From positions 1 through 64,000 of the IMG/VR virus record IMGVR_UViG_3300023184_000027: 64,000 nt of DNA; one strand, 5' to 3'. A program made the position numbers and the translations under genes. Positions 345 through 27,533 of the stretch are shown here, piece after piece (the stretch's first letter is position 1; every line of letters starts with the position of its first letter). A model generated the notes under the pieces. The model did no database searches. It saw only the letters and a list, made by a program, of their open reading frames with translations, and was not told the origin of the DNA.

Positions 345-686
345 ATGAAATCACACTTTAGAAAAACGGAGTATTACACCTCCCACAACGCAAACGCTCC
401 GGTAGAGTTAGACAGCGAAAAATTCCCCGACTTTAAGGGAGAAACAGAAGAAGAGTTTTTACAATACATCTTTGATAATTTAGATGGATGGGTTGAGGGA
501 GATGATGAATTACCATTTGATGAAGAAACTCAAAACGCATTAGGTGAATTACAATATGGGTCAATGACAGAATATTGGGGTTCTTATCAAAATTATTTTG
601 AAGGAGACCTTCAGATAGGTAAATCAACACCTGATGAGAATTATAAACAAGGTAATTTTGAAATTAACCATTCATTATCCATTTAA
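345..686 (+). CDS. Acidic hypothetical protein (PVEL..FP..G.T family, paralogue of 5198-5419 and 7114-7407)
   Basis: ORF; shared motif PVELDSEKFPDFKGETEEEFLQYI. Confidence 0.7.
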   Translation: MKSHFRKTEYYTSHNANAPVELDSEKFPDFKGETEEEFLQYIFDNLDGWVEGDDELPFDEETQNALGELQYGSMTEYWGSYQNYFEGDLQIGKSTPDENYKQGNFEINHSLSI

Positions 687-694
687 TAACAAAT

Positions 695-726
695 AAAAAC
701 CCTCACTTAACGGTGGGGGTTTCTTT
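695..726. terminator. Bidirectional intrinsic terminator between convergent genes
   Basis: AAAAACCCTCAC-TTAACG-GTGGGGGTTTCTTTT hairpin flanked by A/T runs. Confidence 0.7.
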
Positions 727-1038
727 TTAAAATAAATTGAGGGATGTAATTCGTTTATCCGTAATTTTTTCAACAACTTCAGTCATCAAAGATTTTAATC
801 TTTTATAATCAATACCTAATTGATTTGTGATATCACTAATGGTTTTAATACTAAACGCCATATCATCACCTATTTCATCATAAATAATGATAATATCACC
901 ATTTCTTAACGAAACCCATTGTTCTTCTTCACCATAGGTATCGTTTCGTCTCATTTTAGATACCACTTTTTTCTCTAATGGACCAATAAATTTGATGATA
1001 ACATCAATTAATTTATTTTCAGTAATCAATACTTTCAT
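727..1038 (-). CDS. Hypothetical protein with MKxxITE leader
   Basis: N-terminus MKVLITENKL; GTATTTAAT upstream. Confidence 0.7.
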   Translation of the reverse strand: MKVLITENKLIDVIIKFIGPLEKKVVSKMRRNDTYGEEEQWVSLRNGDIIIIYDEIGDDMAFSIKTISDITNQLGIDYKRLKSLMTEVVEKITDKRITSLNLF

Positions 1039-1134
1039 ACTATTAAATACTATTATTTTCCATTATAATGTAATATAACCCAATATTAAGACATTTTTTT
1101 CCACTAAAAGTGGTATTTTGGCAAATATTTTCCA

Positions 1135-1527
1135 CTATTCTATTGTTTTAACAGGAATATTAAAGTTATCCCAAAACCAATCAATAAATGGTTTGTGCCA
1201 TCTATGACCAAATAAACCATTTAATTGGTCTAGTTTATCAGTGTCTTCAAACTCTAATATTGGAGATTTTTCAATCATTTCTTTTAAAAAAACAGGACTT
1301 AAAGTTTCGGTTTCTTCACTACGCCAATAATCCTCACCATACCATCTGAATAGAGTGTTATCGCCACCATCTTCATAATCATCTGTATAGAATTCTATTG
1401 CATAATCAACTTCATTACCCCAATCATCTATGCCTGGTGTCCATCCAATATTATCAACATCAAACATACTATTAATATATTTGAGTATTAAATCATACAC
1501 TTTATCTTCAGTTATTATAATTTTCAT
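1135..1527 (-). CDS. Hypothetical protein, ITE leader + WF..N..PVK C-terminal family
   Basis: MKIIITEDKV; C-terminal WFWDNFNIPVKTIE. Confidence 0.75.
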   Translation of the reverse strand: MKIIITEDKVYDLILKYINSMFDVDNIGWTPGIDDWGNEVDYAIEFYTDDYEDGGDNTLFRWYGEDYWRSEETETLSPVFLKEMIEKSPILEFEDTDKLDQLNGLFGHRWHKPFIDWFWDNFNIPVKTIE

Positions 1528-1538
1528 ATTTATAAATA

Positions 1539-2384
1539 TTAAATTAAATCGGATAAGGGTAAAATATCAATAGAATTATCACCATAATTGGTAACAATAA
1601 CATTAGTATCATTTGACGCTATCCCATGAGGAAAACTAAATCCGGGGATTGTTTTAATAAAACTTAACTTATCGTCGATTAGTTTAAAATGTAATAATGA
1701 ATCTTGAGCTTGTAAGGTTATAAAACCATCCTCACCACTCAAACAAACCGCGTCAGTCTGACCATAAAAAGTTAATTCATCTATTTGTTTTAAACTAGGA
1801 TATTCAAATAAATATAAAATAGAATCGGTCACAGTAACTTTATTTGTCGCCGATGGTCGGCTACTTGAAGATGAGATTAATATTCTATCGTTGATGATTA
1901 AAATATCTTTAGGGTAATGCTTGAAATTATTAAATTGACGAACATAACCACTGTTAATATTCACATAGAAACATCCCCTATATGTATTATTACTTGTATT
2001 AGTAACAATCACATTATCATTATCAATGATTCTACACCCGTGTATTTGGTCTATTTGTTTTTTAACAATATCTTTAACAAAAACAATTTTATTATCAATT
2101 AAATTAAAAATAGAAATAACACCATATCCATTACCGGTTGATATTATTAACCCATCTTTATAATCAATTAAATCAGGACAATAATTTGTGGTAATTTCAT
2201 CTATGATGGTAAAATCGCCATTCTCAATGGTAATTAAATATATTTTTTTATTTAAAAATGATGCCACCAAAATTAAATTATCAGTCACAAATGAAACCGA
2301 TGTTGCCGTCGCATGTCTTTTATTTTGTCCAGCAAAAACTGTTGGGTATTTTTCTAAATTAAAATCCGGTAATTTAAATTTCAT
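1539..2384 (-). CDS. Beta-propeller-like protein (YncE/NHL-like)
   Basis: Repeated beta blades, PHGI/IHG motifs, VTNYGDNSI. Confidence 0.55.
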   Translation of the reverse strand: MKFKLPDFNLEKYPTVFAGQNKRHATATSVSFVTDNLILVASFLNKKIYLITIENGDFTIIDEITTNYCPDLIDYKDGLIISTGNGYGVISIFNLIDNKIVFVKDIVKKQIDQIHGCRIIDNDNVIVTNTSNNTYRGCFYVNINSGYVRQFNNFKHYPKDILIINDRILISSSSSRPSATNKVTVTDSILYLFEYPSLKQIDELTFYGQTDAVCLSGEDGFITLQAQDSLLHFKLIDDKLSFIKTIPGFSFPHGIASNDTNVIVTNYGDNSIDILPLSDLI

Positions 2385-2385
2385 A

Positions 2386-3093
2386 TTAATTAATTTTATA
2401 GTATTCTTTTATTTCTTTAATGGGGTTTGTCCATTTCCTTAAATATTTTTTTTTAGCAAATGCTTTCACATATACCGACCTTAATTTAGATGATAGATTT
2501 GTCTCTTTATCCACAGTTAGATTAACAGTGTGGATTCTTCTGTGAAATTGAGGTTCTTTAATTAACACAGATTTAATTTTATTATGTTTTAATCTATAGG
2601 AAAATTCAACATCTGCATGACATATCCAATTTTCAAAACCGATTAAATTATTAAATAATGTTTTCTTAATCCCTAAGATTGCAAAAGCGGTTTCCTCACC
2701 CTTAATTGTTTTAATATCATCAACTATTTTAAAATTTAAAAATTTAAAATTAACAACATCAAATGATTCAATATTCTCATAAAAATTATTTAACATCCCA
2801 TCAATCATTAAATCATCAGAGTCAAAAAATAAAACATACTCAAACATTGATTCATTAATTAAATTATTTTTAATAATGTAAGGACCAACATTCTCATTGA
2901 AATGGAAAACTTTTATGTCCCGATAAAACTCCTCGTTTTCTTGTATATGTTTTAATGTTTCTTCACAATTATCTATCCCCACAATTATCTCAACATCAAA
3001 ATTAACATTTTGAGATTGGATGGATTGAATACATTCTTTTAAATATTCAGGGACTTTATGTGTTGGTATTATTATTGAAATTCCGTTAGTCAT
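2386..3093 (-). CDS. Glycosyltransferase family 2
   Basis: ISIIIPTH...ECIQSI..Q, N.GPY..KN, FFDSDD (DxD). Confidence 0.85.
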   Translation of the reverse strand: MTNGISIIIPTHKVPEYLKECIQSIQSQNVNFDVEIIVGIDNCEETLKHIQENEEFYRDIKVFHFNENVGPYIIKNNLINESMFEYVLFFDSDDLMIDGMLNNFYENIESFDVVNFKFLNFKIVDDIKTIKGEETAFAILGIKKTLFNNLIGFENWICHADVEFSYRLKHNKIKSVLIKEPQFHRRIHTVNLTVDKETNLSSKLRSVYVKAFAKKKYLRKWTNPIKEIKEYYKIN

Positions 3094-3116
3094 ACTATTA
3101 AATAATGTTTATATTA

Positions 3117-3142
3117 AAAATCCCCTCTAATTGAGGGGATTA
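3117..3142. terminator. Intrinsic terminator
   Basis: AATCCCCTC-TAATT-GAGGGGATT hairpin. Confidence 0.7.
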
Positions 3143-3144
3143 AA

Positions 3145-3597
3145 TTATATTTCTTCACCAAATAAATCATCTGTCCATCGTTCAGGGACAAGAACCACAA
3201 TATAACCTTTTGTTACATTAACAGCGGATGTTGGTAATAAGTTATTGATTTCTTCTAATAGTTCCTCATTTTCCTTAAAAACGATTCGTAATTTACCATC
3301 TTCAGCGGTATCAACAACTTTATGCTTATTATTTTCCATAATGGACTTGAAGTTTTCAATATCACCAAATTTATCTTCGGTTTCAATATCCAAATCACCA
3401 GTTAAAAATCTTTCAGGGACACTACTTTCACCTCCAGTTTTTAAATATTTAATTTCTTCGTCTGTCATTCCTTCAAGACCAACCTCATTATATAAATCCA
3501 AGATACTATCGTAATAATCGGTATCAAATTGTTCCGTCATAATTAATTTAATAATATCTTTTAATTCAGATTCTGTTAATTTTATAATCTTTGCCAT
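3145..3597 (-). CDS. Acidic hypothetical protein with KLTESEL leader
   Basis: MAKIIKLTESELKDIIKLIMTEQ; ATATTTATA upstream. Confidence 0.7.
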   Translation of the reverse strand: MAKIIKLTESELKDIIKLIMTEQFDTDYYDSILDLYNEVGLEGMTDEEIKYLKTGGESSVPERFLTGDLDIETEDKFGDIENFKSIMENNKHKVVDTAEDGKLRIVFKENEELLEEINNLLPTSAVNVTKGYIVVLVPERWTDDLFGEEI

Positions 3598-3796
3598 AAT
3601 TAGTTTTATCTATAAATATCTAATGAAATCGTTTATCCATTTTATAACACTTTTTTTAATGTTATATAAATTAGATGTGTTAAAAATATTACCGATATTA
3701 AGATAATAAATCCCAATAATATAAGACCTCCGGTTATTAAAAATTTTAAAAAAGTTTCCATATATTAAATTTAATAAAAGTTAAATAACAAATCAA

Positions 3797-3828
3797 TTTG
3801 ATTGTCTCAAAATTAATAATTATATTTG
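3797..3828 (+). promoter_or_regulatory. Bacteroidetes-type sigma-A promoter (-33 TTTG / -7 TAnnTTTG)
   Basis: TTTG-N20-TATATTTG just upstream of ATG 3833. Confidence 0.7.
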
Positions 3829-3832
3829 GGTT

Positions 3833-5056
3833 ATGGAAGAAATAATTAACAAACTAATAAAATATCATATAAAGGGTGTGGATACTTACACTTACAATGA
3901 CTCCACTTGGTTAATCTTTACGAAGACCAAACAATGGGTGATAGAATTAACCGATGGAAAAACTCTATGGTATAATTATAGTTTTTTTAATACCGTATTT
4001 TCTTTTGTATCGTTGGAGGTTGTTCAAAACCAACACCTCATTACAAAATGGGTGGAAGATAATGTGATAAATAAAGTAGAAGACATTTATTTTAGAGATG
4101 CCCGAGATAAAAAACAACAATTTGAAGACACCCTTGAATATGGGGTGAAACGAACCTTAAACGCTGTTGGAGACCCTAAACTTTTAATTGAAGACACTAT
4201 TGAAAATGGGGTGAAAAACATTAGAAATGTAAGGGTTAAACGGTTAGATTCTGTTGAAGACACAATTCAAAATGGGGTTAAGACTACCTACGCTTATCCT
4301 GACACATCCAAAGTTGGTGTTAATGACACCATACAAAATGGTGTGAAGAGTACCAAACCTTATGATTATGAACAAATCCCCGATGTTAATTATGTTATTG
4401 AAAATGGTGTTAAAGAAACACAATTTAACACTTACGAAAATAAAAGTTGGATTGAAGGCATTATTAAAGAAGGTGTAAAACAAACCTTACCTGAAGTGGG
4501 AAAATATATTAACGATGTTGAAGAGGTAATTCAAGAGGGGATAAATCATACTCAACCTCATCTTATAAAAAATAGATATATCGTTGAAGAGGTAATTGAA
4601 GATGGTGTTAAAAGTTCTCACCCACTCCAATATATCTCAAAAGAGATAATTGATGGGGTGGTTAATGATGGTATAATAGAAACCCACGATGATACATACC
4701 ACCACAAAGGAAGAATAGATGGCGTAATTAAGAATGGAGTTAAAGAAACTAAAACAACCGGTAATGATGACCTTACAGCAACTTTTCAATGGATGGATGA
4801 AAATAAAACCGATGATGTTCCCAAAATGATTGATGATATAATTGAGAATGGTATTAAAAAAACAAAACCCGCTAATGGTGACCTTGTATCCGCTATTGAA
4901 TGGATGGATGAAAATAAAACTTTGAATGTCCCCAAAATGATTGATGATATAATTGAGAATGGGGAAAAGATAAATGGAACTTATGCTGGTGGTCAACGTC
5001 AAAGTGAAAAATGTAAATCCGTTGTTGAATATGGAATAAAAAACCCCACCGATTAG
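3833..5056 (+). CDS. Tandem-repeat protein (about 22-aa I.NGVK repeats)
   Basis: About 13 repeats ending IENGVK/IQNGVK; near-exact DNA duplication 4789-4850 vs 4900-4961. Confidence 0.75.
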   Translation: MEEIINKLIKYHIKGVDTYTYNDSTWLIFTKTKQWVIELTDGKTLWYNYSFFNTVFSFVSLEVVQNQHLITKWVEDNVINKVEDIYFRDARDKKQQFEDTLEYGVKRTLNAVGDPKLLIEDTIENGVKNIRNVRVKRLDSVEDTIQNGVKTTYAYPDTSKVGVNDTIQNGVKSTKPYDYEQIPDVNYVIENGVKETQFNTYENKSWIEGIIKEGVKQTLPEVGKYINDVEEVIQEGINHTQPHLIKNRYIVEEVIEDGVKSSHPLQYISKEIIDGVVNDGIIETHDDTYHHKGRIDGVIKNGVKETKTTGNDDLTATFQWMDENKTDDVPKMIDDIIENGIKKTKPANGDLVSAIEWMDENKTLNVPKMIDDIIENGEKINGTYAGGQRQSEKCKSVVEYGIKNPTD

Positions 5057-7821: not shown

Positions 7822-8100
7822 TTATTCTGAAATATCTTCAATACCGGCATCAGGAAAATTATCTTGAAGGTATCTCAACATTAAATCATTTGAGTTTCCC
7901 CCAAAGAAATCCTCCAACTCATCTTCCATATCATAACTTGCAAATATAAAACTACTTTTATTTTTCCATCCAAAAACATCCCCGTAACTCTTTAAATTTT
8001 GAAACTCCTTATGTTCGGGGTCATAAATTAAATTTGTTCGGTGATTAATATATTTAACGAACGCATCGTACATTCTACTTTCGGTGATTAGTATTTTCAT
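7822..8100 (-). CDS. Hypothetical protein with ITE leader
   Basis: MKILITESRM. Confidence 0.7.
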   Translation of the reverse strand: MKILITESRMYDAFVKYINHRTNLIYDPEHKEFQNLKSYGDVFGWKNKSSFIFASYDMEDELEDFFGGNSNDLMLRYLQDNFPDAGIEDISE

Positions 8101-8101
8101 A

Positions 8102-8425
8102 TTAATAATTTAAATCTGATATATAAAATCGTGAGTTAGTTAATTTGGGTTGGTCAAATTTATCGGCAACATATTCTTTACAAATACTCACCAATTCAGG
8201 GATGGATATACTAAACATATTTTTGACGATACCAAAGTCATCACCATTAAAGTTAATAATTTCAGTTTCTGTATCATAATCAAATGCAACACGACCATCA
8301 CCATTCATATATTCTAATAGAACATGGGGAGCCCTCATACTCATCCTTCGTCTCCCGTGTTTTTCATAACCTTTGAGAACCATATCAAAATATCTAAACA
8401 CAAGTTGTTTTATATTATTCATCAA
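8102..8425 (-). CDS. Hypothetical protein (WF-family-like)
   Basis: VFRYFD...MFSI...YVADKF pattern shared with 6218-6475. Confidence 0.6.
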   Translation of the reverse strand: MMNNIKQLVFRYFDMVLKGYEKHGRRRMSMRAPHVLLEYMNGDGRVAFDYDTETEIINFNGDDFGIVKNMFSISIPELVSICKEYVADKFDQPKLTNSRFYISDLNY

Positions 8426-8775
8426 GCAAAGTTATTTATGATATAATTTAGCCCAATACCCAAATGTTTAATACCAAGAATATTTAAAAAATCGGATTCC
8501 TCTATTTTACGATTTTGTTTTTCACTTAAAACCAATACACCATATTCTTTTTGAGGTTGGGCATAATAATTATTACCATCAATATGAAACAAATACATTG
8601 GACCAAAATTGTTAAGTAACCATCTAAACTCCTCTCTACCATCAGAGAACAAGTATTGACCTTTAGGTCCTAACTCAATCCAATTTGTAATCACTTCAAT
8701 ATGGTCAGACAAATCATATCCCACCTCCTTGGTAATTAAATCTTTTATTTTATTCTCCGTAATTATAAATTTCAT
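8422..8775 (-). CDS. Hypothetical protein with ITE leader
   Basis: MKFIITENKI. Confidence 0.7.
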   Translation of the reverse strand: MKFIITENKIKDLITKEVGYDLSDHIEVITNWIELGPKGQYLFSDGREEFRWLLNNFGPMYLFHIDGNNYYAQPQKEYGVLVLSEKQNRKIEESDFLNILGIKHLGIGLNYIINNFA

Positions 8776-8792
8776 ATTAATAAAAGGGGGGT

Positions 8793-9314
8793 TTAAAATT
8801 TTACTTTTGTTTTGATTGACTCTAAACCTTTACCAATAGCCTCAACCCATTTGTTTTGTCCTTTTAAACTATAGTAGTATTTTCCATTCTCTAACTTATA
8901 ATCATATGACTTATCATTGGTTGTATTTATCTTACTTGTCTGTAATTTACCACTATCTTGTTCCATTACCGATTTAAAACGACCAAGGTCTTTAGTTGTG
9001 ATTTCACCGGCGGAATCATCATGACAATAACCATCCCCTTTCTTACAAACCCAAATTGGAATGTTTTTTTCCTTAAGGTATCTTCCCATAGTATTATTAA
9101 AATCAACATTTGTCCAATTACCATCCAAAGGTAAATTAAGTTTGTAATATTTGTTAAAAAAAGCAGCTAGTTCTTTTGTCTCTTGAGATTTCGGTGAAGA
9201 CAATGCTTGAGGACTTAAAGTTTGCTGTTTTAATGCTTGTTCAGATAACATTTGTTTCTCCAATCTCATATTAGCTTCTTGGATATGTCTGATTTTACTA
9301 AAACTTCTATTCAT
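8793..9314 (-). CDS. Leader-bearing protein, possible peptidoglycan-binding-like domain
   Basis: MNRSFSKIRHIQEAN...LSEQ; L..DG.W motif (LPLDGNW). Confidence 0.5.
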   Translation of the reverse strand: MNRSFSKIRHIQEANMRLEKQMLSEQALKQQTLSPQALSSPKSQETKELAAFFNKYYKLNLPLDGNWTNVDFNNTMGRYLKEKNIPIWVCKKGDGYCHDDSAGEITTKDLGRFKSVMEQDSGKLQTSKINTTNDKSYDYKLENGKYYYSLKGQNKWVEAIGKGLESIKTKVKF

Positions 9315-9347
9315 AATATTATTTTAATATAAATATATCAACATTCC

Positions 9348-9405
9348 AAAAAAAGGGGGCGGGGGGATTTGAATACGACCGGAGGGAGTTCGGGTTATGT
9401 AATAG
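9348..9405 (+). repeat. Intergenic G-rich hairpin repeat, copy 1
   Basis: AAAAAGGGGGCGGGGGGATTTGAATACGACCGGAGGGAGTTCGGGTTATGTAATAG. Confidence 0.85.
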
Positions 9406-9441
9406 GCATAAAAAAACCCACTCGTTAAAGTGGGGTTTAAA

Positions 9442-10572
9442 TTATTTTATTTTTTTACTAATAGTGAGGATTTTATCTGTTGGTGAATAAACTGGTGGTT
9501 CAGGACTTTCCCAAGATTCACGACCTTGTATTATTTTATAATTACGGTATATCGGACCATTTGATATTAAAATAAAATCTGACTTATATGATAATTTAGG
9601 TGGTTTAACCCTTTTTGAAAATGGAATATAATACTTATCATCTAATTTATATATTCCCTCATTTTTGGCGTTAACCGGTTGGAAAATAATCCGTTTACCC
9701 TCATCTTCAACAACAACTACTTCAGAATAATCTGTTTTTGTTGAGGGACAAAAATTTTGAACAACTTTTGAATTAGGTAAGAATTTTTTAATATGAGGTT
9801 CATAATTACTTTTTGACATAAAAGTTGGTTTATAACTAATATTTTTGAGTAATGTATTTAAAAATTCACCTTTAAATAATTTATCTTTACTATCGTATAC
9901 CCATTGAACAAAATCATTATGTTCAAAAGTTTTCATTTGTTTAATATATGATTTAATAATTAAACTTATTGGGTCATTTTCAAATATAATGTAATTAAGT
10001 TTTGACCAACTAACACCTTTTTCATTAATAGAATTTGGTAGGGAATAAATATTTAAAAACCCTTCAGTTTTATCACAATACTTTGAATTGTAAACTCCGT
10101 AATTATCACTATAAATTTCTTTCAATGATTTTTCAATAATATTACGAAGGTCTTTACATTGATTGTTATCACAATAACCTTTGTTAGACCTATAAGCTTT
10201 AGAGCGTTCAAAAAATAATCGTTCCGTTTCTTTCTCAGATAACTTACCAATATGTCGTTCAAACTTTTCATCAAAATTAATATTATATTTTCTTCTAATA
10301 TCAGACAAATTCATATAAAAATTTGAATTACCTGATTTTTGAACCAAATCAGCATCAAATATATATTCTTTTCCTGTAGTTATATCAGTGAATATAAACA
10401 CTTCAGTTTCCGGTTTTTTTTCAAATCGTCCGGTTGATTTAAATTGTACCATATGAATACCAAATTGAGGTAATAGATGAGGTTCACTAAATCCATTAAA
10501 ATCAATATCCTGTGTTTGTTCCTCAGTTTCCTTTAATATTCTATACTGTTGTTCTGTTATAATAAATTTCAT
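9442..10572 (-). CDS. Large hypothetical protein with ITE leader
   Basis: MKFIITEQQYRILKE; ATATTTATT upstream. Confidence 0.75.
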   Translation of the reverse strand: MKFIITEQQYRILKETEEQTQDIDFNGFSEPHLLPQFGIHMVQFKSTGRFEKKPETEVFIFTDITTGKEYIFDADLVQKSGNSNFYMNLSDIRRKYNINFDEKFERHIGKLSEKETERLFFERSKAYRSNKGYCDNNQCKDLRNIIEKSLKEIYSDNYGVYNSKYCDKTEGFLNIYSLPNSINEKGVSWSKLNYIIFENDPISLIIKSYIKQMKTFEHNDFVQWVYDSKDKLFKGEFLNTLLKNISYKPTFMSKSNYEPHIKKFLPNSKVVQNFCPSTKTDYSEVVVVEDEGKRIIFQPVNAKNEGIYKLDDKYYIPFSKRVKPPKLSYKSDFILISNGPIYRNYKIIQGRESWESPEPPVYSPTDKILTISKKIK

Positions 10573-10590
10573 ATTAATAAATATACCATC

Positions 10591-10626
10591 ATTCCAAAAA
10601 AGGGGGAGTTCGGTTTATGTGATGAG
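10591..10626 (+). repeat. Intergenic repeat, internally deleted copy 2
   Basis: ATTCCAAAAAAGGGGGAGTTCGGTTTATGT joins both ends of copy 1 and lacks the hairpin. Confidence 0.7.
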
Positions 10627-11382
10627 TTAAAACTGAAGGGGTAATCCACTACGATTTCGTGGGTACATTATTTGTTTATATTGGGGTAAATTTAATAATA
10701 ACACATCATTTAAACCATTTATTAACACTTCTTTCATAAATCTATCCCTAAATTCTTCAGTCCTTCCACATAAATGAACAAACACCCCATTCTGAATAGG
10801 ATAAAATTGTTCGGTGCAATTAAGAATATACGGGTCGTGTATAACTATTCTATCTAAATTTTCCGGTATAATTTTCTCAACCATCACTTTTTGTTCATAT
10901 GGGAATTTCTTCCATATCTCATCATCCCGTAATTCCCAAATATCCGACTCAATTTTAATTGCCTCACGACTTACAAATTTTACACCGGTATTCACTTTAT
11001 TTTCGGTTTCTATATCATACTTAAAATCCCATACTCTATGATTGACCTCATTAGGTTTTTCATAAAATAAATGGTATAGTATATTTGTGTCCGATAAGTC
11101 AATAACCGATTCTAACCTAACCTCCATACGATTTACAAAAACATCGGTATCCAACCAAACATACCAGGACGCATTCGGAAATCTTAAAGAGGCTCGTTTT
11201 AAGATTTCACATCTTCTATAATGTAGATGATGAACATCTTTATCAATGGGTTCAACCTCATCATAATAAAAATCATAATTATGTAGGGAACAATAATACT
11301 CAATGGTTTTTTTGGTATTTACCGCAAACTTAACATCCAACGGCCAATGACCGCTAACCAACACAATATCCGATTCTTTCAT
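10627..11382 (-). CDS. Glycosyltransferase (GT34/MNN10-like); probable start MKESDIV at 11382
   Basis: YC..HNYDF, WYVWLDTDVF (DxD), NTGV, YEQ, VHLCG. Confidence 0.7.
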   Translation of the reverse strand: MKESDIVLVSGHWPLDVKFAVNTKKTIEYYCSLHNYDFYYDEVEPIDKDVHHLHYRRCEILKRASLRFPNASWYVWLDTDVFVNRMEVRLESVIDLSDTNILYHLFYEKPNEVNHRVWDFKYDIETENKVNTGVKFVSREAIKIESDIWELRDDEIWKKFPYEQKVMVEKIIPENLDRIVIHDPYILNCTEQFYPIQNGVFVHLCGRTEEFRDRFMKEVLINGLNDVLLLNLPQYKQIMYPRNRSGLPLQF

Positions 11383-11451
11383 GTAAATAAATATACATTG
11401 CCAATAAAAAAGGGTCGGTGTGGTATAACACAAATAAAAATTCCCCAGAGT

Positions 11452-11483
11452 ATTGACTGGGAAAATTAAGTTTACTATCTTTG
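11452..11483 (+). promoter_or_regulatory. Bacteroidetes-type promoter
   Basis: ATTG-N20-TATCTTTG upstream of 11503. Confidence 0.6.
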
Positions 11484-11502
11484 TAGTATAAAACAATTAA
11501 AT

Positions 11503-11934
11503 ATGGAAAAGATTAAAAAATTATTAAACGAACATTACGATGAATTCATGGATTTGGTAGATTTATTTTACGATGAAAAATATCCATCAAAGAAACCAAA
11601 GACCATATGTTTTTTGACCGTATTGGGAAAAAAATATGACAGCAAAGTATTTGCAAACAACTACAGGGAGTTTTTACACGACCTATCAACAATGGTGGGA
11701 GGGAAAGTATTTAAACATGTATTAGGAAATTATGTGAAATTTATTCCAAATGAATTCTCTAAATCAATACTTAAAAAAAATCAATACGACAACATTAACA
11801 ATGTGTTCTATGTGTCAACCTATACAGACACCGAAAGAAAAATAAATCATGTAAAAGATTTATGTGAATTCTTAGATATTAAAATAGAATTGGAATATCC
11901 AAAACCTCATCATACAGAGATGGAAGTTGTATAA
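11503..11934 (+). CDS. Hypothetical protein, possible SeqA-C-like DNA-binding domain
   Basis: FYVSTYTDTERKINHVKDL resembles SeqA C-terminal WVITNTNTGRK. Confidence 0.4.
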   Translation: MEKIKKLLNEHYDEFMDLVDLFYDEKYPSKKPKTICFLTVLGKKYDSKVFANNYREFLHDLSTMVGGKVFKHVLGNYVKFIPNEFSKSILKKNQYDNINNVFYVSTYTDTERKINHVKDLCEFLDIKIELEYPKPHHTEMEVV

Positions 11935-11972
11935 TAATAAACCCCCTTAATTGGGGGTTTTATTTTATACTT

Positions 11973-12018
11973 AAAAAGGGGGCGGGGGGATTTGAACACG
12001 ACCGAAGGGAGTTCGGGT
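11973..12018 (+). repeat. Intergenic G-rich hairpin repeat, copy 3
   Basis: AAAAAGGGGGCGGGGGGATTTGAACACGACCGAAGGGAGTTCGGGT. Confidence 0.85.
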
Positions 12019-12033
12019 CCGGAGAGATTCGAA

Positions 12034-13548
12034 TTATTTTGGAAAAAACTCATCAATATACCCTAATCTTATTGCACTACCATGACCACCCGGATATTTT
12101 TTAGCAAACTCTGTTCTATTCCTACATTCGGCCGCCTTTTCTTTTATTAATTCATATGACCAAGATATTCTTGGGGTAAAAAATTCATTCATAACACCAT
12201 TTTTATTTAACCAATGAAAAGCTCCAAAATACTTTTTTTGTAATTCTGATTTACCTTTACATTCTAACAATTTTTCTTTAACTAACTCAAATGTCCATTC
12301 ATTATACATTATTCTTGATTTCGTCATATCCGAAATTAATTCTTCCCACCATCCATTTTGAATAGCAATAGTTTTAGCGGATTTTGAAATTTTTTCAATG
12401 TATTCTTCTCTAGTTTTACATCCTTCCTTCATTTTTATAAAATACCTGTAAGGATATTTTGGTTTACGAGTACCACCTAACGAACCTGCACCATTTTTAT
12501 TTAATAACACATAACCCATATCACGATATTTTTCCATCCACATTGCCTCACTAATTATAGAATCTTCTTCTTTGAGAATAGGTGTTAAAATTTTAAATTC
12601 CGGAAACATATTCACCTCATTAATTTTTCGGAAAACCGGTGATTTACCACGAGAACCATAGAAATGTGATTTCTTTCTCTGTTCAATCTTACAAGTTAAC
12701 CCAACATAGGCAAATTTTGGGGTTGTATTATTAAATTCACAAACATAAATAACTCTTTCTTTAAGAGTCAATTGTCTTTCCATACGGTCAAGTAAATTAT
12801 TCCATTTATTTTTACGAATTATACCAGCAAGGGTTTTATAATCGTTCTCAAAATCCATAAGAACCGAATAGTTTTTAGTTATTTCTTCACATTTTTCATA
12901 AGTCCAATAACCTTTTGGTTTGGATAAATATTCCATATGTTCTATACAATGTAACCGAAATTCTTTATCCTCAACACTCTCGGATAAGTGACTAAAACTA
13001 TTAAATACCGAAGGTTCGTTTAGTCTCCAATCTCTTTGATTTTCATATTTTAATGCTGATTCAAATATTTCTTCTTTTGTATGTCGTTTTTTTCGTTTTT
13101 TTCGCTCAATATGTGAACAAACTTCATCAAGAATACCTTTTCTTATTGCAGAATTGTAATGACCTGAACTATTTTTGGAAAATTCGGTTCTATTATTATA
13201 TTTTAACGCTTCAGTTCTGATTTCATCATCCTCAATTATTTTTGATTTATTTCTGACTAAATGAAGAGTTAATTCATCATACCAACCATTCTTACATATA
13301 GTACTTAATAAAGTAGTACCTTGTAATTCAGATATATTAGTTAATTTAGAAATTTCTTCTTTACATTTCTCGTATGTCCATTTTGGATTTGTTATTGAGT
13401 AAGGCATTTCCCAATGAGATAATAAATCAAACCATTTATTTTTTCTTATAGTTTCAATGGCTGACCGGTCAGTTTGAATAAATTCACTATAACTATTGTA
13501 TTTAGAAACTTCTTCTTTACATTTTTCATACGTTAATTTTCTTCTCAC
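12034..13548 (-). CDS. GIY-YIG endonuclease with multiple W-T-Y-E helical repeats (homing-endonuclease-like)
   Basis: IYVCEF...AYVGLT...R...H...E...LLN; repeated WTYEKC.E...Y..R.EF units; promoter TATCTTTG at 13569-13576 (minus). Confidence 0.75.
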   Translation of the reverse strand: MRRKLTYEKCKEEVSKYNSYSEFIQTDRSAIETIRKNKWFDLLSHWEMPYSITNPKWTYEKCKEEISKLTNISELQGTTLLSTICKNGWYDELTLHLVRNKSKIIEDDEIRTEALKYNNRTEFSKNSSGHYNSAIRKGILDEVCSHIERKKRKKRHTKEEIFESALKYENQRDWRLNEPSVFNSFSHLSESVEDKEFRLHCIEHMEYLSKPKGYWTYEKCEEITKNYSVLMDFENDYKTLAGIIRKNKWNNLLDRMERQLTLKERVIYVCEFNNTTPKFAYVGLTCKIEQRKKSHFYGSRGKSPVFRKINEVNMFPEFKILTPILKEEDSIISEAMWMEKYRDMGYVLLNKNGAGSLGGTRKPKYPYRYFIKMKEGCKTREEYIEKISKSAKTIAIQNGWWEELISDMTKSRIMYNEWTFELVKEKLLECKGKSELQKKYFGAFHWLNKNGVMNEFFTPRISWSYELIKEKAAECRNRTEFAKKYPGGHGSAIRLGYIDEFFPK

Positions 13549-13617
13549 ACTTATTTCTTTAATAATGACAAAGATAATACAATTTATTTAATTACCAAAT
13601 TTATTTTATTTTTTTTC

Positions 13618-13676
13618 AAAAAAAAGGGGGCGGGGGGATTGAAACACGACCGGAGGGAGTTCGGGTTATGTAATAG
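13618..13676 (+). repeat. Intergenic G-rich hairpin repeat, copy 4
   Basis: AAAAAGGGGGCGGGGGGATTGAAACACGACCGGAGGGAGTTCGGGTTATGTAATAG. Confidence 0.85.
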
Positions 13677-13717
13677 ACACATTTGATTCCCCCAATCTTA
13701 TTCACTATATTTAACCC

Positions 13718-14203
13718 ATGAACTTATACGAACAATACTTACAAGCGTCAAAAACAAAAGATTTAGATGAACAAGAAAAAGTCATCATTAACCTTATGAA
13801 AGAATACCGAAAAATTATACCCTCTTTTTTTAATAGAGCAGCAACTCGTTTTGGACCTCATAAAGTATATGTGGTACATATGACAGTGGATGGGGTGGAT
13901 ATGGTTAAAGTTGGTTATACCAAAAATTCCATTAAAGATAGATACAAAGAAAAAAGATGGAAGGATTACGGCAAAATAGAAATCATCAAAATATATAGAC
14001 AAGAAATTCTTCAAGGATTAGGTGCGTTTAATTTTGAAAATGAACTTAAATCACAATGCTTGGAATATTTAATAAATTCAAATTTGGAACAACCGGGTAA
14101 AGGAGAGTTTATGGATTTCAAACATTTAGATATGGTTCTAAACCTATATGATAGTTTAATACCACAATATGAAAATGTAATAGGTCTTAAACGAACAAAT
14201 TAA
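13718..14203 (+). CDS. GIY-YIG-like (T5orf172/MUG113-type) nuclease
   Basis: VYVVHM...KVGYT...R...FE..LK...GEF. Confidence 0.6.
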   Translation: MNLYEQYLQASKTKDLDEQEKVIINLMKEYRKIIPSFFNRAATRFGPHKVYVVHMTVDGVDMVKVGYTKNSIKDRYKEKRWKDYGKIEIIKIYRQEILQGLGAFNFENELKSQCLEYLINSNLEQPGKGEFMDFKHLDMVLNLYDSLIPQYENVIGLKRTN

Positions 14204-14212
14204 AAAACCCCA

Positions 14213-15211
14213 CTAATTGAAGTGGGGGATTGGTTTAACTTTTATATCAACATTATTTTCAGAATCAATAGATACTTCAAAATAAGGAAACTTTTCTTTA
14301 AGATAACCTTCTGGTGTCATTTGATTACCCTTCTTCAAATTATCATCAGCCCATAATGGTTGAAAATTAGTATAATGACATAACCTCTTAACATCTTCAA
14401 GTGTCTTAGCCAACGATATTGGAATAATGTGGTCAATATGCCAACCATATATCCCATAATTATCCCAACTCATTCCTTTTAAAAATCTATTTTCTAAATA
14501 TTTCCTAAACTCATCCGGAGTACAACCAATTATCTTAAACATTGAACTATCCTTTTTAACACCTATCTGTTTTAAATAAGATGATGTCCTTGTACGAAGA
14601 TTACATATTGCACGATAAAAAGGGTCTCTCTGTCTTCTTAATTTGACATGTTTCTTCTTAGATTTTTTATATGTTTCCTGATTATTATCTTTCCATTTCT
14701 TTTTAGTGGTCTTAACCTTTGTCGGATGCTCAAGTCGATAAATCCTCATTCTCTCTTTCTCACATTCCCCACACTTTGTGATTGTACCTTCGTAAAATTC
14801 AGAAATAGGTTTAGTTAACCCACATTTACCACAAGTACTCTCCGTTAAGGTTTCCCTAAGTAATTTTATTTTTTTATTATATATTATTCTTTTTTCCTTA
14901 ACACTGAGTTTAACCTTAACTATATTTTCAAAACTAAATGTCTCCGTAGGATAATACCATATAACATTAGAGTATTTATTCTTCTTAACCTTACCCCGAT
15001 TATTATATTCTATAATCTTATCAGGGTTATTCTCACGATATTTTTTTTTGGATTCCCTAACCTTATCCGGATTATTCTCACGATATATTTTTTTATCAAT
15101 ATTACAACATTCCCGACAACAATAATTTAGACCATCCGATGAACTCTTAAGATTATTAAATTCCGATAATTCCTTATCAATACCACATTTTGAACATTTC
15201 TTTAATCCCAT
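14213..15211 (-). CDS. HNH endonuclease with Zn-finger repeats (probable start MGLKKC)
   Basis: KKCSKC...CREC, CGKC...CGEC, WHIDHIIP...HYTNFQPLW..DNLKK. Confidence 0.8.
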   Translation of the reverse strand: MGLKKCSKCGIDKELSEFNNLKSSSDGLNYCCRECCNIDKKIYRENNPDKVRESKKKYRENNPDKIIEYNNRGKVKKNKYSNVIWYYPTETFSFENIVKVKLSVKEKRIIYNKKIKLLRETLTESTCGKCGLTKPISEFYEGTITKCGECEKERMRIYRLEHPTKVKTTKKKWKDNNQETYKKSKKKHVKLRRQRDPFYRAICNLRTRTSSYLKQIGVKKDSSMFKIIGCTPDEFRKYLENRFLKGMSWDNYGIYGWHIDHIIPISLAKTLEDVKRLCHYTNFQPLWADDNLKKGNQMTPEGYLKEKFPYFEVSIDSENNVDIKVKPIPHFN

Positions 15212-15299
15212 AAAGATAATAATAACAAACTTTTTTTCTTTGTCAAGTTTTTTCACTATCCGGAAATTTTCCGGATTATCAACCATTATTTCCGGATAC

Positions 15300-15605
15300 C
15301 CCAAAATGGGGGGATTTTTTCCCAAAAATTTTTCCAGAATTTTTTAGAAAAATTTTCTATAAAAGTTTTTTTTACCCATACACAATGTAGAGAGGATTAT
15401 CCCCCCTTTTTGGATATAGATATGGGGGGGAGCCAAGGGAGGATACGCCCCCGGTAGGGGGTATGGGGGGTATATAGGGGGGGATGGGAGGGTGTATGGA
15501 CAAAAAACCCCCCTGTAAATAGATAAGGGGGGAGGGGGTATATTTGATTTATCCTAATGAATGGGGGAAAAGTTATCAACATGACATGGTGTCAGTTGTT
15601 AATAA
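15300..15605. other. Non-coding G-run-rich tract with palindromic DnaA-box-like site
   Basis: Many G4-G7 runs on + strand (15424-15538); TTATCAACA-TGACATGGTGTCA-GT-TGTTAATAA at 15573-15605. Confidence 0.6.
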
Positions 15606-16562: not shown

Positions 16563-17455
16563 AATTGTTAATAAGTTTTTCTAAATATAGTTATTAACAA
16601 TTGAGTTGTACACACTCTCAGAGGGGATTGTTAATAACTTTTTATGTTAAATTTCTTGTTTTTGACAAAATGTCAGTCTCTCTTTACGATGGGGATAATC
16701 CTTTCCCCCCACTTTTAACCCCACACACTTACCATCTTCTACCACATATTCCCACCGAATATGGTTCTGTGGATAGTTAAACATCACTTTTTCCCCTCTG
16801 AGAGTAGTGTGAGGGACAATTAATTCACTATATACATTCCCCAGTGATTTATGTCAGTTATGGTACATAACGCGTGAGAACACGTAGTGTGTTAGGATGA
16901 TTACTTCAACGACCCGTCAGGGGGTATTTAATTGACTACTAATGGACGAACTTAATGGTTATGGAATGGGACACTACAGAGACAGATAATACCATTAAAA
17001 CTTACCTTTCGTATCAGTCCTGTGAGTTTTAAACTGACTACAGTGATACAAAACATAAGTTATTATATATCCCCTCATTGTTCATTTCATTTGATGGTTC
17101 ATGCACAATGAACTGAAACTAATAATGAACACCATACCGGATAACTAATCCTGTCTGTAGTTTGTCCCCCCTTAAAAGGGGATTAGTTAAATGGGGGGTA
17201 AAATGTATATATGATGAGTAAAACAATTATAGTGTATAATGTTTGGGGTAAAATGATTATATGTATAAATTATTGAGTTTTTTATACATATGGAAGTTGA
17301 TGTGTATAAATAAATGGATTTCTTATACATATACGTATTTATCCGTATATATACGATTGGTTATACGAATGAAAAATAGTAAAGGATGGAACTATGAGTG
17401 AAATTCCGGAACGGTAGTGTAGGAATGATAACGAATGGTTTTATCGTTTAGTATT
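16563..17455. other. Long non-coding region; putative replication origin or genome-end region
   Basis: TGTTAATAA/TTATTAACA at 16566, 16591, 16629; TGACAAAATGTCA at 16663; hairpins at 16879-16893, 16909-16925, 17403-17426; TGTATA/TATACA repeats at 17200-17370. Confidence 0.5.
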
Positions 17456-22686: not shown

Positions 22687-23076
22687 ATAATCGTCTGTTA
22701 TTTGTTTAACTTCTAATCCCGTATTTTCTTCAAACCATTGTTTAAATATTGGTTTCCACAAATCCCCAAATAAAGACGTTAGTTTTCTACCAACCACAGG
22801 ATATATGTGTAATAAAGGACAGTCATAGTTGTGTAAACGACCATAACCCGCAAAGTATTCATCTTCCGGACCAGCGTTTGCATTACAACCATAATAAATG
22901 TAAGAATCATCATCATTTATGAAAAAAACAATGTCTCCAAATCTATCAACATCATCTTGGTAAGTGCCAGCTGTCGTCCTCATATTCTCATACCACCCAT
23001 AATCCGGAATAAATTCACTATCCAAATACTTACGAATTATCTTATCAATCTTATTTTCCGTTATTACTATTTTCAT
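22675..23076 (-). CDS. ITE-leader protein of WF family
   Basis: MKIVITENKI...LFGDLWKPIFKQWFEENTGLEVK; paralogue of 1135-1527. Confidence 0.75.
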   Translation of the reverse strand: MKIVITENKIDKIIRKYLDSEFIPDYGWYENMRTTAGTYQDDVDRFGDIVFFINDDDSYIYYGCNANAGPEDEYFAGYGRLHNYDCPLLHIYPVVGRKLTSLFGDLWKPIFKQWFEENTGLEVKQITDDYLSI

Positions 23077-23326
23077 ATAAATAAATATCCCATAAATGAA
23101 AAACCCCCATTAATCTTGGGGGTTATCTTTTTCTTTATTATGTACCACATAAAAATTATGTCCAAAGTGAGGTAAATCAATATTGTCACCAAACCCCAAT
23201 GTCTCAACCATATTTTCAAGGTCTCTATTGGACATCTTATTTAGGACATCCACACCAACCTTTAATAGTATCAGTTCTATAACCTCATCTCTACTAATTT
23301 CTACTGTTGATTTCCACCCCATATTT

Positions 23327-25147: not shown

Positions 25148-25483
25148 TTAACTTAAATCTTCTTTATCTTCCATATAATGAACAATTTTAACCGGTAATT
25201 TAAATTTATCTTCAAACCAATGTTTTACTAACAATTTACTTTCATCCATTGTATAACCGAACCAAACTATAGGTAAGAGAATATCATAACAAATTGATAA
25301 AGTATTTAAATTTGGATTGTACACCATTATAATACCACCACCATTTATATAATTAACCAGAAAAACCTCCTTCCCTTGACCATTTCTAATCTGTTTAGTT
25401 TTATTATACATTTTAGAAAATGTTTTATTCAAGTTTTTTATAGCTAATTCGTCTCTACGACTTTCCTTTATTAATAATTTCAT
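25148..25483 (-). CDS. IKE-leader WF-family protein (tandem paralogue)
   Basis: MKLLIKESRRDELA...WFEDKFKLPVK. Confidence 0.75.
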   Translation of the reverse strand: MKLLIKESRRDELAIKNLNKTFSKMYNKTKQIRNGQGKEVFLVNYINGGGIIMVYNPNLNTLSICYDILLPIVWFGYTMDESKLLVKHWFEDKFKLPVKIVHYMEDKEDLS

Positions 25484-25498
25484 ATGTTATTTTATTTT

Positions 25499-25828
25499 TT
25501 AATTTAAAACACCTTTTTGTGTGTGATGAGTAATTTTAACCGGTAATTCAAACTTATCTTCAAACCAATTTTTTACTAACATTTTACTTTCATGTGGTGT
25601 ATAACTGAAATAAACTATGGGAGCAAGAATATCATCACAAATGTATAAAGTTTTCGCCCTTTCACCGTAAATCATTATAACACCATCACCATTTCTATAA
25701 TCAATTCTCCTATGTGACCCTGTTGAATCTGTAATATAATCAACATCAATATACATATTGGAAAATGCTTTATCCAACTCTTTTTTTGCCAATTCGTCTC
25801 TACGACTTTCTTTTATTACTATTCTCAT
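25499..25828 (-). CDS. IKE-leader WF-family protein (tandem paralogue)
   Basis: MRIVIKESRRDELA...WFEDKFELPVK. Confidence 0.75.
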   Translation of the reverse strand: MRIVIKESRRDELAKKELDKAFSNMYIDVDYITDSTGSHRRIDYRNGDGVIMIYGERAKTLYICDDILAPIVYFSYTPHESKMLVKNWFEDKFELPVKITHHTQKGVLN

Positions 25829-27419: not shown

Positions 27420-27533
27420 ATGTATAAATATAACACGAGAGTAAAAATTACTCCCATCTTTTGAACGAAGGTAATTTTGAGTTTTTTTTACTCTCGTTTA
27501 ATTCTTTTCATTAAATAGTAAATCTTATAAGAA

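Follow-up and report, generated by a model that had tools for sequence, protein, structure and literature searches.

Introduction

Several systems have been described in which short structured DNA elements lie between the genes of phages or mobile cassettes. The promoter-early stem-loop (PeSL) cassettes of T4-type myoviruses are short conserved composite motifs located in the intergenic spaces of hyperplastic regions full of ORFans, between the stop of one gene and the start of the next and next to a promoter. They contain a structure and G/C homopolymer tracts, occur in about 50 copies per genome, and constitute the end points of insertions, deletions and replacements between related phages (Arbiol et al. 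2010, PMC2839356; Comeau et al. 2014, PMC4122927). The early promoters of coliphage N4, which are read by the virion RNA polymerase (vRNAP), are template-strand hairpins with a 3-nt loop, in which a sheared G:A pair, the closing C:G pair and a purine at -11 are required, whereas the variable stem bases need only pair (PMC4496689). Integron attC sites, which are long imperfect palindromes of 57-141 nt with conserved R/L boxes and are conserved in structure but not in sequence, bound mostly promoterless single-gene cassettes, require an IntI integrase and are read as folded single strands with extrahelical or mismatched bases. Finally, DNA mini-hairpins of the d(GCGAAGC) type, studied by Hirao and colleagues, carry a C-GAA-G or C-GGA-G triloop with a sheared G.A pair, a motif reported to confer unusual thermal and nuclease stability on single-stranded DNA; this is a physical motif rather than a genetic system.

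We describe here a conserved intergenic sequence of about 52 bases, bearing a strand-specific mini-hairpin, that marks the borders of single-gene cassettes in a lineage of uncultured, mostly freshwater jumbo phages. The element is absent from cultured phages, and no description of it was found in the searchable literature.

Results

Copies of the element in the phage record

The window (the whole 64,000-nt stretch analysed, from a 207,952-bp phage record estimated to be 71% complete) contains the following features:

9342..9399 (+), full copy 1: A7 (9348-9354), G5CG6 (9355-9366), linker ATTTGAATA (9367-9375), hairpin CGACC-GGA-GGGAG (9376-9388), TTCGGGT tail (9389-9395); 69.1 bits
10596..10619 (+), internally deleted copy: A6-GGGGG joined directly to AGTTCGGTTTATG, without the rest of the G-run, the linker and the hairpin; 24 nt from the start codon of 9442-10572
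11965..12022 (+), full copy 2: hairpin 11999-12011, loop GAA; between the terminator of the + gene 11503-11934 and the stop of 12034-13548, with no gene downstream of it on the - strand
13612..13670 (+), full copy 3: hairpin 13647-13659, loop GGA; upstream, in gene orientation, of the Bacteroidota-type promoter TTTG-N19-TATCTTTG (13599-13569, - strand) of the 504-aa ORF
9329..9336 (-), ATATTTAT box between copy 1 and the ATG (9314) of 8793-9314
9442..10572 (-), 376-aa ORFan cassette bounded by copy 1 and the deleted copy
12034..13548 (-), 504-aa homing-endonuclease-like cassette with repeated W-TYEKCKEE modules, bounded by copies 2 and 3
9411..9440 (-), ordinary intrinsic terminator of 9442-10572 (CCCAC/GTGGG stem followed by a T-run), between the stop codon of that gene and copy 1

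The observation made in the earlier note, that three full copies and one internally deleted copy lie on the + strand in this region, was confirmed. The hairpin of copy 1 reads CGACCGGAGGGAG, and in the deleted copy the truncated G-run is followed directly by AGTTCGGTTT. The 15-nt core matched three times in the window, against 0.03 matches expected in shuffled sequences. A search of the whole record on both strands detected no further copy of the G-run, the core or the hairpin-only motif. The bracketing of genes is also as the note described: copy 1 and the deleted copy flank 9442-10572, and the copies that it placed at 11973 and 13618 flank the 504-aa ORF, although this ORF matched GIY-YIG only weakly (20.8 bits, below the cut-off of 22.6). 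By contrast, the sequence at 16909 that the note considered to be a variant of the element is not a member: it has no G.A tandem, was not hit by the model and belongs to a different conserved non-coding region. No match to Rfam was obtained in the window at the gathering score, and nothing was found at the element in six related loci at E values up to 1.

Conservation and covariation of the hairpin

Scans of viral sequences identified the element in about 15 IMG/VR contigs, and a single metagenome scan yielded at least 120 contigs, mostly from freshwater. Five large related genomes each contained one to three clustered, co-oriented copies. We investigated whether the hairpin was conserved by using scans whose patterns left it free; the positions that were fixed in these patterns (A4, G5CG6, TT and GTYCGG) are inflated in the conservation profile. 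The arrangement C-G-A-NN-G-R-A-N'N'-G-A-G was invariant in 189 of 197 distinct copies. The two inner pairs were CC/GG in 152 copies, GT/AC in 18, AC/GT in 17 and GG/CC in one, with a single mismatch, and none of 500 shuffles reached the observed level of covariation, whereas a competing hairpin did no better than shuffles. The loop was GAA in 129 copies and GGA in 60, and the closing pair was C-G in 170 of 189 copies, otherwise T-A or G-C. The linker had a fixed length of 8-9 nt, and different stem variants occurred on one contig. The outermost A-T pair included in the stem in the earlier note is not conserved in relatives (A/T 123, T/T 35, C/T 28). Nearest-neighbour folding, the parameters of which do not capture the stability of such mini-hairpins, gave no significant energy for either strand, and stability was not measured. 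The evidence for the hairpin, with its tandem G.A pairs and C-GRA-G triloop, is covariation rather than predicted stability.

The note had named random orientation of copies elsewhere, together with substitutions breaking the stem, as grounds for rejecting its proposal. Neither was observed: all 64 multi-copy contigs had their copies in the same orientation, and substitutions kept the stem.

Position relative to genes

Copies were typically spaced one gene apart, with a median spacing of 783 nt. Neighbouring ORFs lay on the strand opposite to the element in 150 of 167 and 144 of 174 cases, so that co-orientation follows gene direction and the G-rich hairpin strand is the template strand of about 90% of neighbouring ORFs. 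The next ATG was located at a median of 32 nt from the start of the A-run, and the previous stop at a median of 22 nt from the tail. Promoter-like boxes stood at a fixed distance from the element, consisting of either the ATATTTAT box or a Bacteroidota-type TTTG/TAnnTTTG promoter, and travelled with many copies. The ATATTTAT box also stands 4-20 nt before the ATG of at least 30 genes in the genome, and such boxes occur without the element.

An ordinary terminator preceded the element at 69 of 176 junctions. The remaining 107 junctions have none, so the element is probably transcribed, and it might conceivably act as RNA on the mRNA (C-rich) strand. In this view the 3'UTR or intercistronic RNA, made of hairpin, linker, C6GC5 and U7, would serve as a factor-dependent termination site (Rho-type loading site), a processing site or a stability signal between cassettes. 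Such an RNA would be strongly C-rich and G-poor within an AU-rich transcript and would end in a U-run, and Watson-Crick covariation supports either strand equally. We nevertheless consider this reading unlikely. On this strand the invariant tandem mismatches would be U.C/C.U and the loop UYC, which have no known stabilising geometry; no hairpin abuts the U-run, and folding showed nothing significant. The U-run follows an unpaired C-tract and the G-tract has no complement on the same strand, so that the element does not have the form of an intrinsic terminator. Element-free junctions also mostly lack terminators (6 of 29 have one), so the element does not fill a terminator's place. Furthermore, rut sites are not normally sequence-conserved.

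Gain, loss and exchange of cassettes

All copies are intergenic and lie in one variable region, and the cassettes fall into 69 clusters of small ORFans. We investigated whether relatives differ by genes lying exactly between copies, as had been suggested beforehand in the note. Three independent cases of [flank-element-cassette-element-flank] versus [flank-element-flank] were found, with the joint inside the element. Collinearity with the closest relative (93-97% nucleotide identity) breaks at the element, and the 1.2-kb stretch 9400-10606, bounded by copies, is 89.8% identical to the DNA of the complete related phage genome G004, against about 70-76% for neighbouring syntenic DNA. Of 331 alignment ends, 146 fell at +15 to +25, at the edges of the element, and 135 pairs of sites shared one flank only, against 48 sharing both. 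Co-orientation and edge-clustered breakpoints would, however, also arise for any conserved sequence sitting between variable genes, and no matched set of element-free junctions was analysed as a control, beyond the long unbroken collinearity with G003, one of the genomes compared. Homologues of the 504-aa ORF are also flanked by copies in other contigs, and half-copies exist, breaking at the G-run.

These results could also be accounted for by a dedicated recombination site, at which the hairpin and G-run would be recognised and cut by a structure- or sequence-specific enzyme, through attC-like recombination, a hairpin-guided HUH enzyme or one of the neighbouring homing endonucleases, with site-specific exchange rather than exchange by general homology. 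The bounding of cassettes by co-oriented copies with presence/absence polymorphisms, the half-copies, the existence of three endonuclease-like genes in or beside the cluster and the reading of attC sites as folded single strands are consistent with this possibility, which we nonetheless regard as doubtful. Profile searches of the record, 71% complete, revealed no tyrosine integrase (PF00589), no serine recombinase and no Y1 HUH transposase (PF01797) of the kind that reads subterminal hairpins in IS200/IS605-type or REP/RAYT elements. The linkage of the sub-parts of the element to the flanks decays from both sides, with no single crossover point, and the copies flanking the endonuclease gene are intact. 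Like integron cassettes, these cassettes are single genes bounded by co-oriented structured sites, but they carry their own promoter-like signals, and the element is not a long palindrome with variable sequence: its sequence is far more conserved, and its structure far smaller, than those of attC sites.

Discussion

Interpretation

The explanation we favour, with moderate confidence, is that the repeat is a portable regulatory and recombination junction module of about 52 bp, carried by a lineage of uncultured jumbo myophages whose hosts are probably Bacteroidota. Read in the direction of the flanking genes (the - strand here), each copy follows the stop codon of one gene and precedes the promoter-like signals of the next by a fixed short distance, in the order hairpin, linker of 8-9 nt, C6GC5, T-run, about 10 nt, ATATTTAT box or TTTG/TAnnTTTG promoter, and ATG. 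Two points are established by our analysis: the module contains a genuine secondary structure (C-G, G.A, A.G, two freely covarying Watson-Crick pairs and a G-R-A triloop), and the co-oriented copies are the points at which single-gene cassettes are gained, lost and exchanged between phages. The mechanism and the function are our inferences. Homologous recombination or template switching between copies would delete or duplicate the intervening cassette in cis and swap cassettes between co-infecting genomes, as described for PeSL cassettes. The strict sequence conservation and compensatory changes mean that the module also has a cis function read as structure, and, as different stem variants coexist in one genome, one reader would have to accept them all. 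This function is most likely tied to transcription of the early-gene array, as an insulator or an upstream control site, and would act on the G-rich template strand, which can form the stable mini-hairpin. There is no direct evidence for any transcriptional effect; no RNA data were examined, and the starts, ends and strand of transcripts are unknown. In addition, the hairpin is too small to be a classical terminator and is not followed by a T-run. The downstream genes carry promoter-like boxes that also occur without the element, and one junction works with a hairpin-less copy (10596-10619), so the element is not needed for expression.

The interpretation proposed in the earlier note was supported only in part. 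Its alternative of recombination sites for gene cassettes is backed by the data above, but nothing shows that the element acts as single-stranded DNA in priming, packaging or injection. Relative to the conserved non-coding, origin-like region at 16.6-17.4 kb, the hairpin strand would be the leading-strand template, which argues against lagging-strand priming.

Comparison with N4 promoters

The loop and closing pair, 5'-C-G-R-A-G-3' with a central purine, match the N4 vRNAP promoter hairpin, and the same mixture of invariant stem bases and stem bases that need only pair is seen here. The hairpin is likewise on the template strand of the flanking genes, a short fixed distance before them, in a few co-oriented, clustered copies. 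The element might thus be an N4-type initiation signal, extruded on the template strand and read by a phage RNA polymerase or primase, which would start synthesis a fixed distance away, in the linker, and transcribe or prime towards the A/G-run and the next gene. We consider this possible but unlikely. No T7-like RNA polymerase domain (PF00940) was detected, but the control genomes were also silent and the record is incomplete, leaving undecided whether the phage encodes such an enzyme. Whether transcription starts a fixed distance downstream of the loop, as it does from N4 promoters on single-stranded or supercoiled templates, was not examined. No DFDxD motif, DnaG zinc ribbon or Prim-Pol was found, and the giant ORFs gave no hits to Pfam, PHROGs, PDB sequences or the ESM Atlas. 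The phage is a sheath-bearing jumbo phage encoding its own sigma70-family factor, and the downstream genes have ordinary promoter-like boxes. Two of the five stem positions are G.A mismatches, and a conserved G5CG6 tract and A-run lie where N4 has its start site and A-ruler. Copy 2 faces no gene, the element points against the genes in one contig (L004), and in G004 the cluster lies 66-70 kb from the end, not at the terminus as the N4 promoters do.

What reads the hairpin was not identified: no suitable polymerase, primase, integrase or HUH transposase was found in this 71%-complete record. It nevertheless remains possible, although we consider it improbable, that the mini-hairpin is extruded from duplex DNA and read as structure by a dedicated, still unrecognised phage polymerase, primase or nicking enzyme. 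The junctions would then be true strand-specific single-stranded-DNA signals, and a second, independent instance of the N4 principle, in jumbo myophages of Bacteroidota and coupled to gene-cassette exchange.

Comparison with PeSL cassettes

The PeSL cassettes are the closest system in concept, sharing with the element its intergenic location in a variable region rich in ORFans, a structure accompanied by a homopolymer tract, and its use as the end point of indels and replacements between related phages. The conserved core is not itself a host-type promoter; the promoter-like signals following it at a fixed distance were not assayed for activity, and their presence leaves undecided whether the module includes a host sigma70-type early promoter as PeSLs do. 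The structure is a 13-nt mini-hairpin with tandem G.A pairs, not a terminator stem-loop, with no significant folding energy on the mRNA strand, although termination itself was not measured, and the poly-G tract has no poly-C partner. There are only one to four clustered copies per genome. Mini-circles were not examined. Unlike the situation in PeSLs, the sequence itself is nearly invariant across phages whose proteins are 40-70% identical.

The small number of copies in this genome (three or four, all within 4.3 kb) might suggest a neutral relic of local duplications or a chance similarity without function. This is very unlikely, being already contradicted by the conservation and covariation data: about 190 distinct copies in more than 130 contigs have near-invariant positions and compensatory stem changes while their flanks are unrelated, and one otherwise unrelated phage contig shares only the element.

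The repeat element in the 64-kb window and in other genomes

The window is the first 64 kb of a single-contig virus record of 207,952 bp, with a G+C content of 31.6% and a CheckV completeness of 71%, in which no tRNA gene and no Rfam match were found. The earlier note had reported three full copies and one internally deleted copy of an intergenic repeat, all on the + strand, and this observation was confirmed and extended. The copies are as follows:

9342-9399, + strand, full copy 1
10596-10619, + strand, deleted copy, with its A-run and five Gs joined directly to AGTTCGG
11965-12022, + strand, full copy 2
13612-13670, + strand, full copy 3

The core matched three times, against 0.03 matches expected in shuffled sequences, and the rest of the 208-kb record contained no further copy of the G-run, the core or the hairpin-only motif CGA-NN-GRA-N'N'-GAG on either strand.

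A scan of IMG/VR with the hairpin core identified nine true contigs, all of which also carried the A-run and the G-run, although these were not required by the pattern. A second scan, in which the G-run and the TTCGGG tail were fixed and the hairpin was left free, identified five more contigs. A metagenome scan, again with the hairpin left free, identified at least 120 contigs, including that of the window itself, most of them from freshwater-lake assemblies, with a few from marine and activated-sludge assemblies. By contrast, a scan of one genome for each of 185,579 prokaryote species gave a single hit, on a 2.5-kb contig of a Bacteroides MAG. The element is therefore a phage sequence rather than a host sequence. 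No match to the element was obtained in cultured phages, and the phage has no close cultured relative, its DNA polymerase being only about 23% identical to the best hit. No paper containing the motif was found in the literature library searched. Five large related records (115-308 kb) each carry one to three copies, clustered within a few kb on one strand.

Secondary structure and extent of the element

A profile search of all the loci retrieved gave 246 hits, corresponding to 197 distinct cores. In 189 of these cores, the string C-G-A-NN-G-R-A-N'N'-G-A-G is intact; the other eight are a chance match in a contig with 60% G+C, truncated copies and one copy with a variant G-run. The outer A-T pair proposed in the earlier note is not kept, whereas the inner pairs covary.

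Stem and loop variants among the 189 distinct copies
Inner two stem pairs: CC/GG, 152; GT/AC, 18; AC/GT, 17; GG/CC, 1; one mismatch (AC/GG), 1
Loop: GAA, 129; GGA, 60 (never a central pyrimidine)
Outer pair: A/T, 123; T/T, 35; C/T, 28

In the model-aligned set of 150 matches, none of 500 shuffles reached the observed covariation, and sliding of the 3' partner destroyed the pairing. The hairpin is therefore real. A competing hairpin (GACCGRA/TYCGGGTC), preferred by ViennaRNA for copy 2, did no better than shuffles and is broken in the stem variants. A G-quadruplex involving the GGG of the hairpin was also rejected, because the GGG is lost in the GT/AC and AC/GT variants. Different stem variants occur side by side on the same contig, as in contigs L024, L025, L047 and L089, so that whatever reads the site must accept all of them; this favours recognition of a paired structure over co-evolving half-sites of a duplex-binding dimer.

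The two G.A positions never change to Watson-Crick pairs, and on the complementary strand they would be U.C/C.U mismatches with a UYC loop. We therefore infer that the G-rich strand, as in d(CGACCGAAGGGAG), is the structured one, although Watson-Crick covariation alone does not distinguish between the strands. Nearest-neighbour folding gave no significant energy for either strand, as DNA or as RNA, but the parameters used do not model sheared G.A pairs or GNA triloops. No known RNA family was matched, and a signal in the RNA of the mRNA strand is considered a doubtful alternative.

Information content is high from about 27 nt before the hairpin to about 24 nt after it, giving an element of about 52 nt, which consists, in order, of an A-run; G4-6, one interrupting base and G5-7; a linker of 8-9 nt beginning ATT(T)GA; the 13-nt hairpin; and T-Y-C-G-G followed by a few tail classes. 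Positions fixed in the search patterns are inflated in this profile, but the hairpin interior was left free in the second IMG/VR scan and in the metagenome scan, and the G-run was left free in the first IMG/VR scan. The linker resembles a T-loop on the - strand (TTCAAATCC), but a tRNA fragment or att site was rejected, as no T-stem is possible and the linker varies. The linker often reads ATTGAAAC (e.g. at 13638-13645 in the window), like the 8-nt 5' handle of many CRISPR RNAs, or TTGACA/TTGACC, like a -35 box; we judged these resemblances to be coincidental, without testing them.

Position relative to genes

About 85% of the coding sequence of the genome is on the - strand. In 64 of 64 contigs with more than one copy, all the copies share one strand, with a median spacing of 783 nt (range 376-4217), which corresponds to one gene. 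Neighbouring ORFs lie on the strand opposite the G-rich strand in 150 of 167 cases on the A-run side and in 144 of 174 cases on the tail side. The start codon of the next gene is a median of 32 nt from the start of the A-run, and the stop of the previous gene is a median of 22 nt from the tail. There are exceptions to this orientation: copy 2 faces the terminator of a convergent gene, and in contig L004 the G-rich strand is the coding strand of both neighbours.

In gene orientation, the T-run is followed either by about 10 nt, a TATATTTAT box and an ATG 4-20 nt later, or by a Bacteroidota-type TTTG-N19-20-TATCTTTG promoter. An ATATTTAT box precedes at least 30 genes across the genome without the element. 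The box (on the - strand, e.g. at 9329-9336, 10577-10584 and 23080-23087 in the window) stands 4-20 nt before the ATG, which would give nearly leaderless mRNAs. The phage encodes a sigma70-family factor with regions 1.2, 2 and 4 (record positions 82431-83285, - strand), for which this box is a candidate promoter class. The downstream genes therefore have their own promoter-like signals. An ordinary terminator lies between the previous gene and the element at 69 of 176 junctions, and element-free ATATTTAT junctions have one in only 6 of 29 cases, indicating that the element does not simply replace a terminator.

Many otherwise unrelated small ORFs, in the window and in many related loci, share their first ~20 codons (MKIIITEEQY..., MKKVIRLTESDL..., MNRSYSKIRHIQE...), which could be a common N-terminal signal or recombination reaching into the start of the genes. 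In the window, these stretches lie at 982-1046, 1471-1535, 8044-8108, 8719-8783, 23020-23084 and 27363-27427.

Gain, loss and exchange of cassettes at the element

The closest relative (hereafter referred to as G003) is 93-97% identical over long stretches, but collinearity breaks at the element and resumes about 6 kb further on in the window. Stretch 9400-10606, which runs from the tail of copy 1 into the G-run of the deleted copy, is 89.8% identical to a second relative (G004), in which it also ends inside an element, whereas neighbouring syntenic DNA is about 70-76% identical. Across 135 sites with 700-nt flanks, the ends of long collinear alignments pile up at the edges of the element: 146 of 331 internal right ends fall at +15 to +25, and 32 left ends fall at the start of the A-run. 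Of the pairs of sites sharing at least one flank, 48 share both, 60 share only the promoter side and 75 share only the tail side.

In three independent cases, one contig has the arrangement flank-element-cassette(s)-element-flank and another has the same two flanks (88-99% identical) around a single element, which is a hybrid of the two parental copies.

Contigs with and without cassettes between the same flanks
L060, cassette(s) between two copies; L072, one copy
L112, cassette(s) between two copies; L149, L077 and L042, one copy
L047, cassette(s) between two copies; G003 (locus L023), one copy

Gene gain or loss exactly between copies is what the earlier note had asked relatives to show, and it is what these three cases show. 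Its interpretation was thus supported in part, for the alternative of recombination sites for gene cassettes. Half-copies also exist, consisting of an A-run and G-run alone or of a hairpin and tail alone. Linkage of the sub-parts of the element to the flanks decays from both sides, and no single, fixed crossover point was seen; although the test is coarse, this fits general homologous recombination or template switching better than a precise site-specific cut, and a dedicated recombination site is considered unlikely. L004 is a phage with different genes, sharing only one partial protein with this genome, and its genes next to the element have no homologues in the other loci; at the DNA level, only the 55-60-nt element is shared.

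The cassette genes fall into 69 clusters of small ORFans, one of which is the endonuclease-like gene flanked here by copies 2 and 3. This gene is the first of three endonuclease-like genes in a row in the window (12034-15325), none of which is present in G003:

12034-13548, weak GIY-YIG match, with repeated W-TYEKCKEE modules
13718-14203, weak endonuclease PHROG match
14213-15325, endonuclease VII / HNH PHROGs

Search for a protein reading the hairpin

No tyrosine integrase, serine recombinase, Y1 HUH transposase, DnaG zinc ribbon or Prim-Pol was found in this 71%-complete record, and neither were a T7-like RNAP domain (the control was silent in this search) and the DFDxD motif. The record does contain a tail sheath, a family-B DNA polymerase, a DnaB-like helicase, ribonucleotide reductase and an SbcC-like protein, together with SprB and Fib_succ_major domains, which are consistent with a Bacteroidota host. 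Three giant ORFs, of 1845, 2108 and 1663 aa, gave no match to Pfam, PHROGs or PDB sequences; their structures were not predicted, because without alignments the models would be poor. The Atlas search, run on the 1845-aa and 1663-aa ORFs, found only unannotated proteins, with no named look-alikes.

Comparison with known systems and interpretation

The closest concept is the PeSL of T4-type phages. PeSLs are composite terminator/promoter motifs of hyperplastic regions, in which indels and swaps end and which can form mini-circles (PMC2839356, PMC4122927). The present element shares with PeSLs the location, the association with ORFans and the recombinational role, but its conserved core is not a host promoter, its structure is a tiny G.A-containing hairpin rather than a terminator, it has few copies, and its sequence is nearly invariant across distant phages. 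The loop and closing pair of the hairpin (5'-CGRAG-3', central purine) match the promoter hairpin of the N4 virion polymerase, as does the mix of invariant and merely paired stem bases; the N4 hairpin is also on the template strand (PMC4496689). This resemblance is a lead rather than evidence of membership: the polymerase was not found in this 71%-complete record, the downstream genes have their own signals, and in the complete relative the cluster lies 66-70 kb from the genome end. An N4-type initiation signal is retained only as an unlikely alternative, albeit the least unlikely of the three considered here.

We regard the analysis as having demonstrated that the element is a conserved, structured junction of single-gene cassettes and that recombination uses it. 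That it also has a transcription-linked cis function on the template strand is our preferred inference, and the two statements combined are held with no more than moderate confidence; no RNA run was listed for the region, so expression data were not examined. How large phages acquire and shuffle their many orphan early genes is poorly understood outside the T4 group. The element is a sharply defined and easily searchable junction sequence, abundant in freshwater metagenomes and with clear before-and-after examples of cassette gain and loss. It can serve as a marker delimiting exchangeable gene cassettes in uncultured jumbo phages, for testing whether PeSL-type modular shuffling is general, and for asking why a structure identical in its loop to the N4 promoter hairpin is kept by selection. 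If a protein reads the hairpin as DNA, this would extend a mechanism known so far essentially from one phage family.

Other features of the window and the record

A stretch of 890 nt without ORFs (window 16563-17455) is about 75% conserved in G003, G004 and a third related record, G001. It has iteron-like GTATAA/TTATAC repeats at about 17200-17370, always lies 2.5-7 kb to the same side of the element cluster and may be an origin or an RNA gene. The hairpin at 16909, listed in the earlier note as a variant of the repeat, belongs to this stretch and shows its own compensatory change (CCC/GGG versus CCAC/GTGG).

A 2459-aa ORF (window 57749-64000, running to 65128) contains long arrays of period-9 repeats, where G+C content rises to 46%, and a second giant ORF at the far end of the record (201441-207821) has collagen repeats. 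Six 66-nt tandem repeats (window 4122-4612) lie inside a gene of 407 aa (3833-5056), the length of which differs between relatives (297-677 aa). Finally, two adjacent paralogous genes (window 25148-25853, two repeat families) are about 78% identical over about 300 nt.
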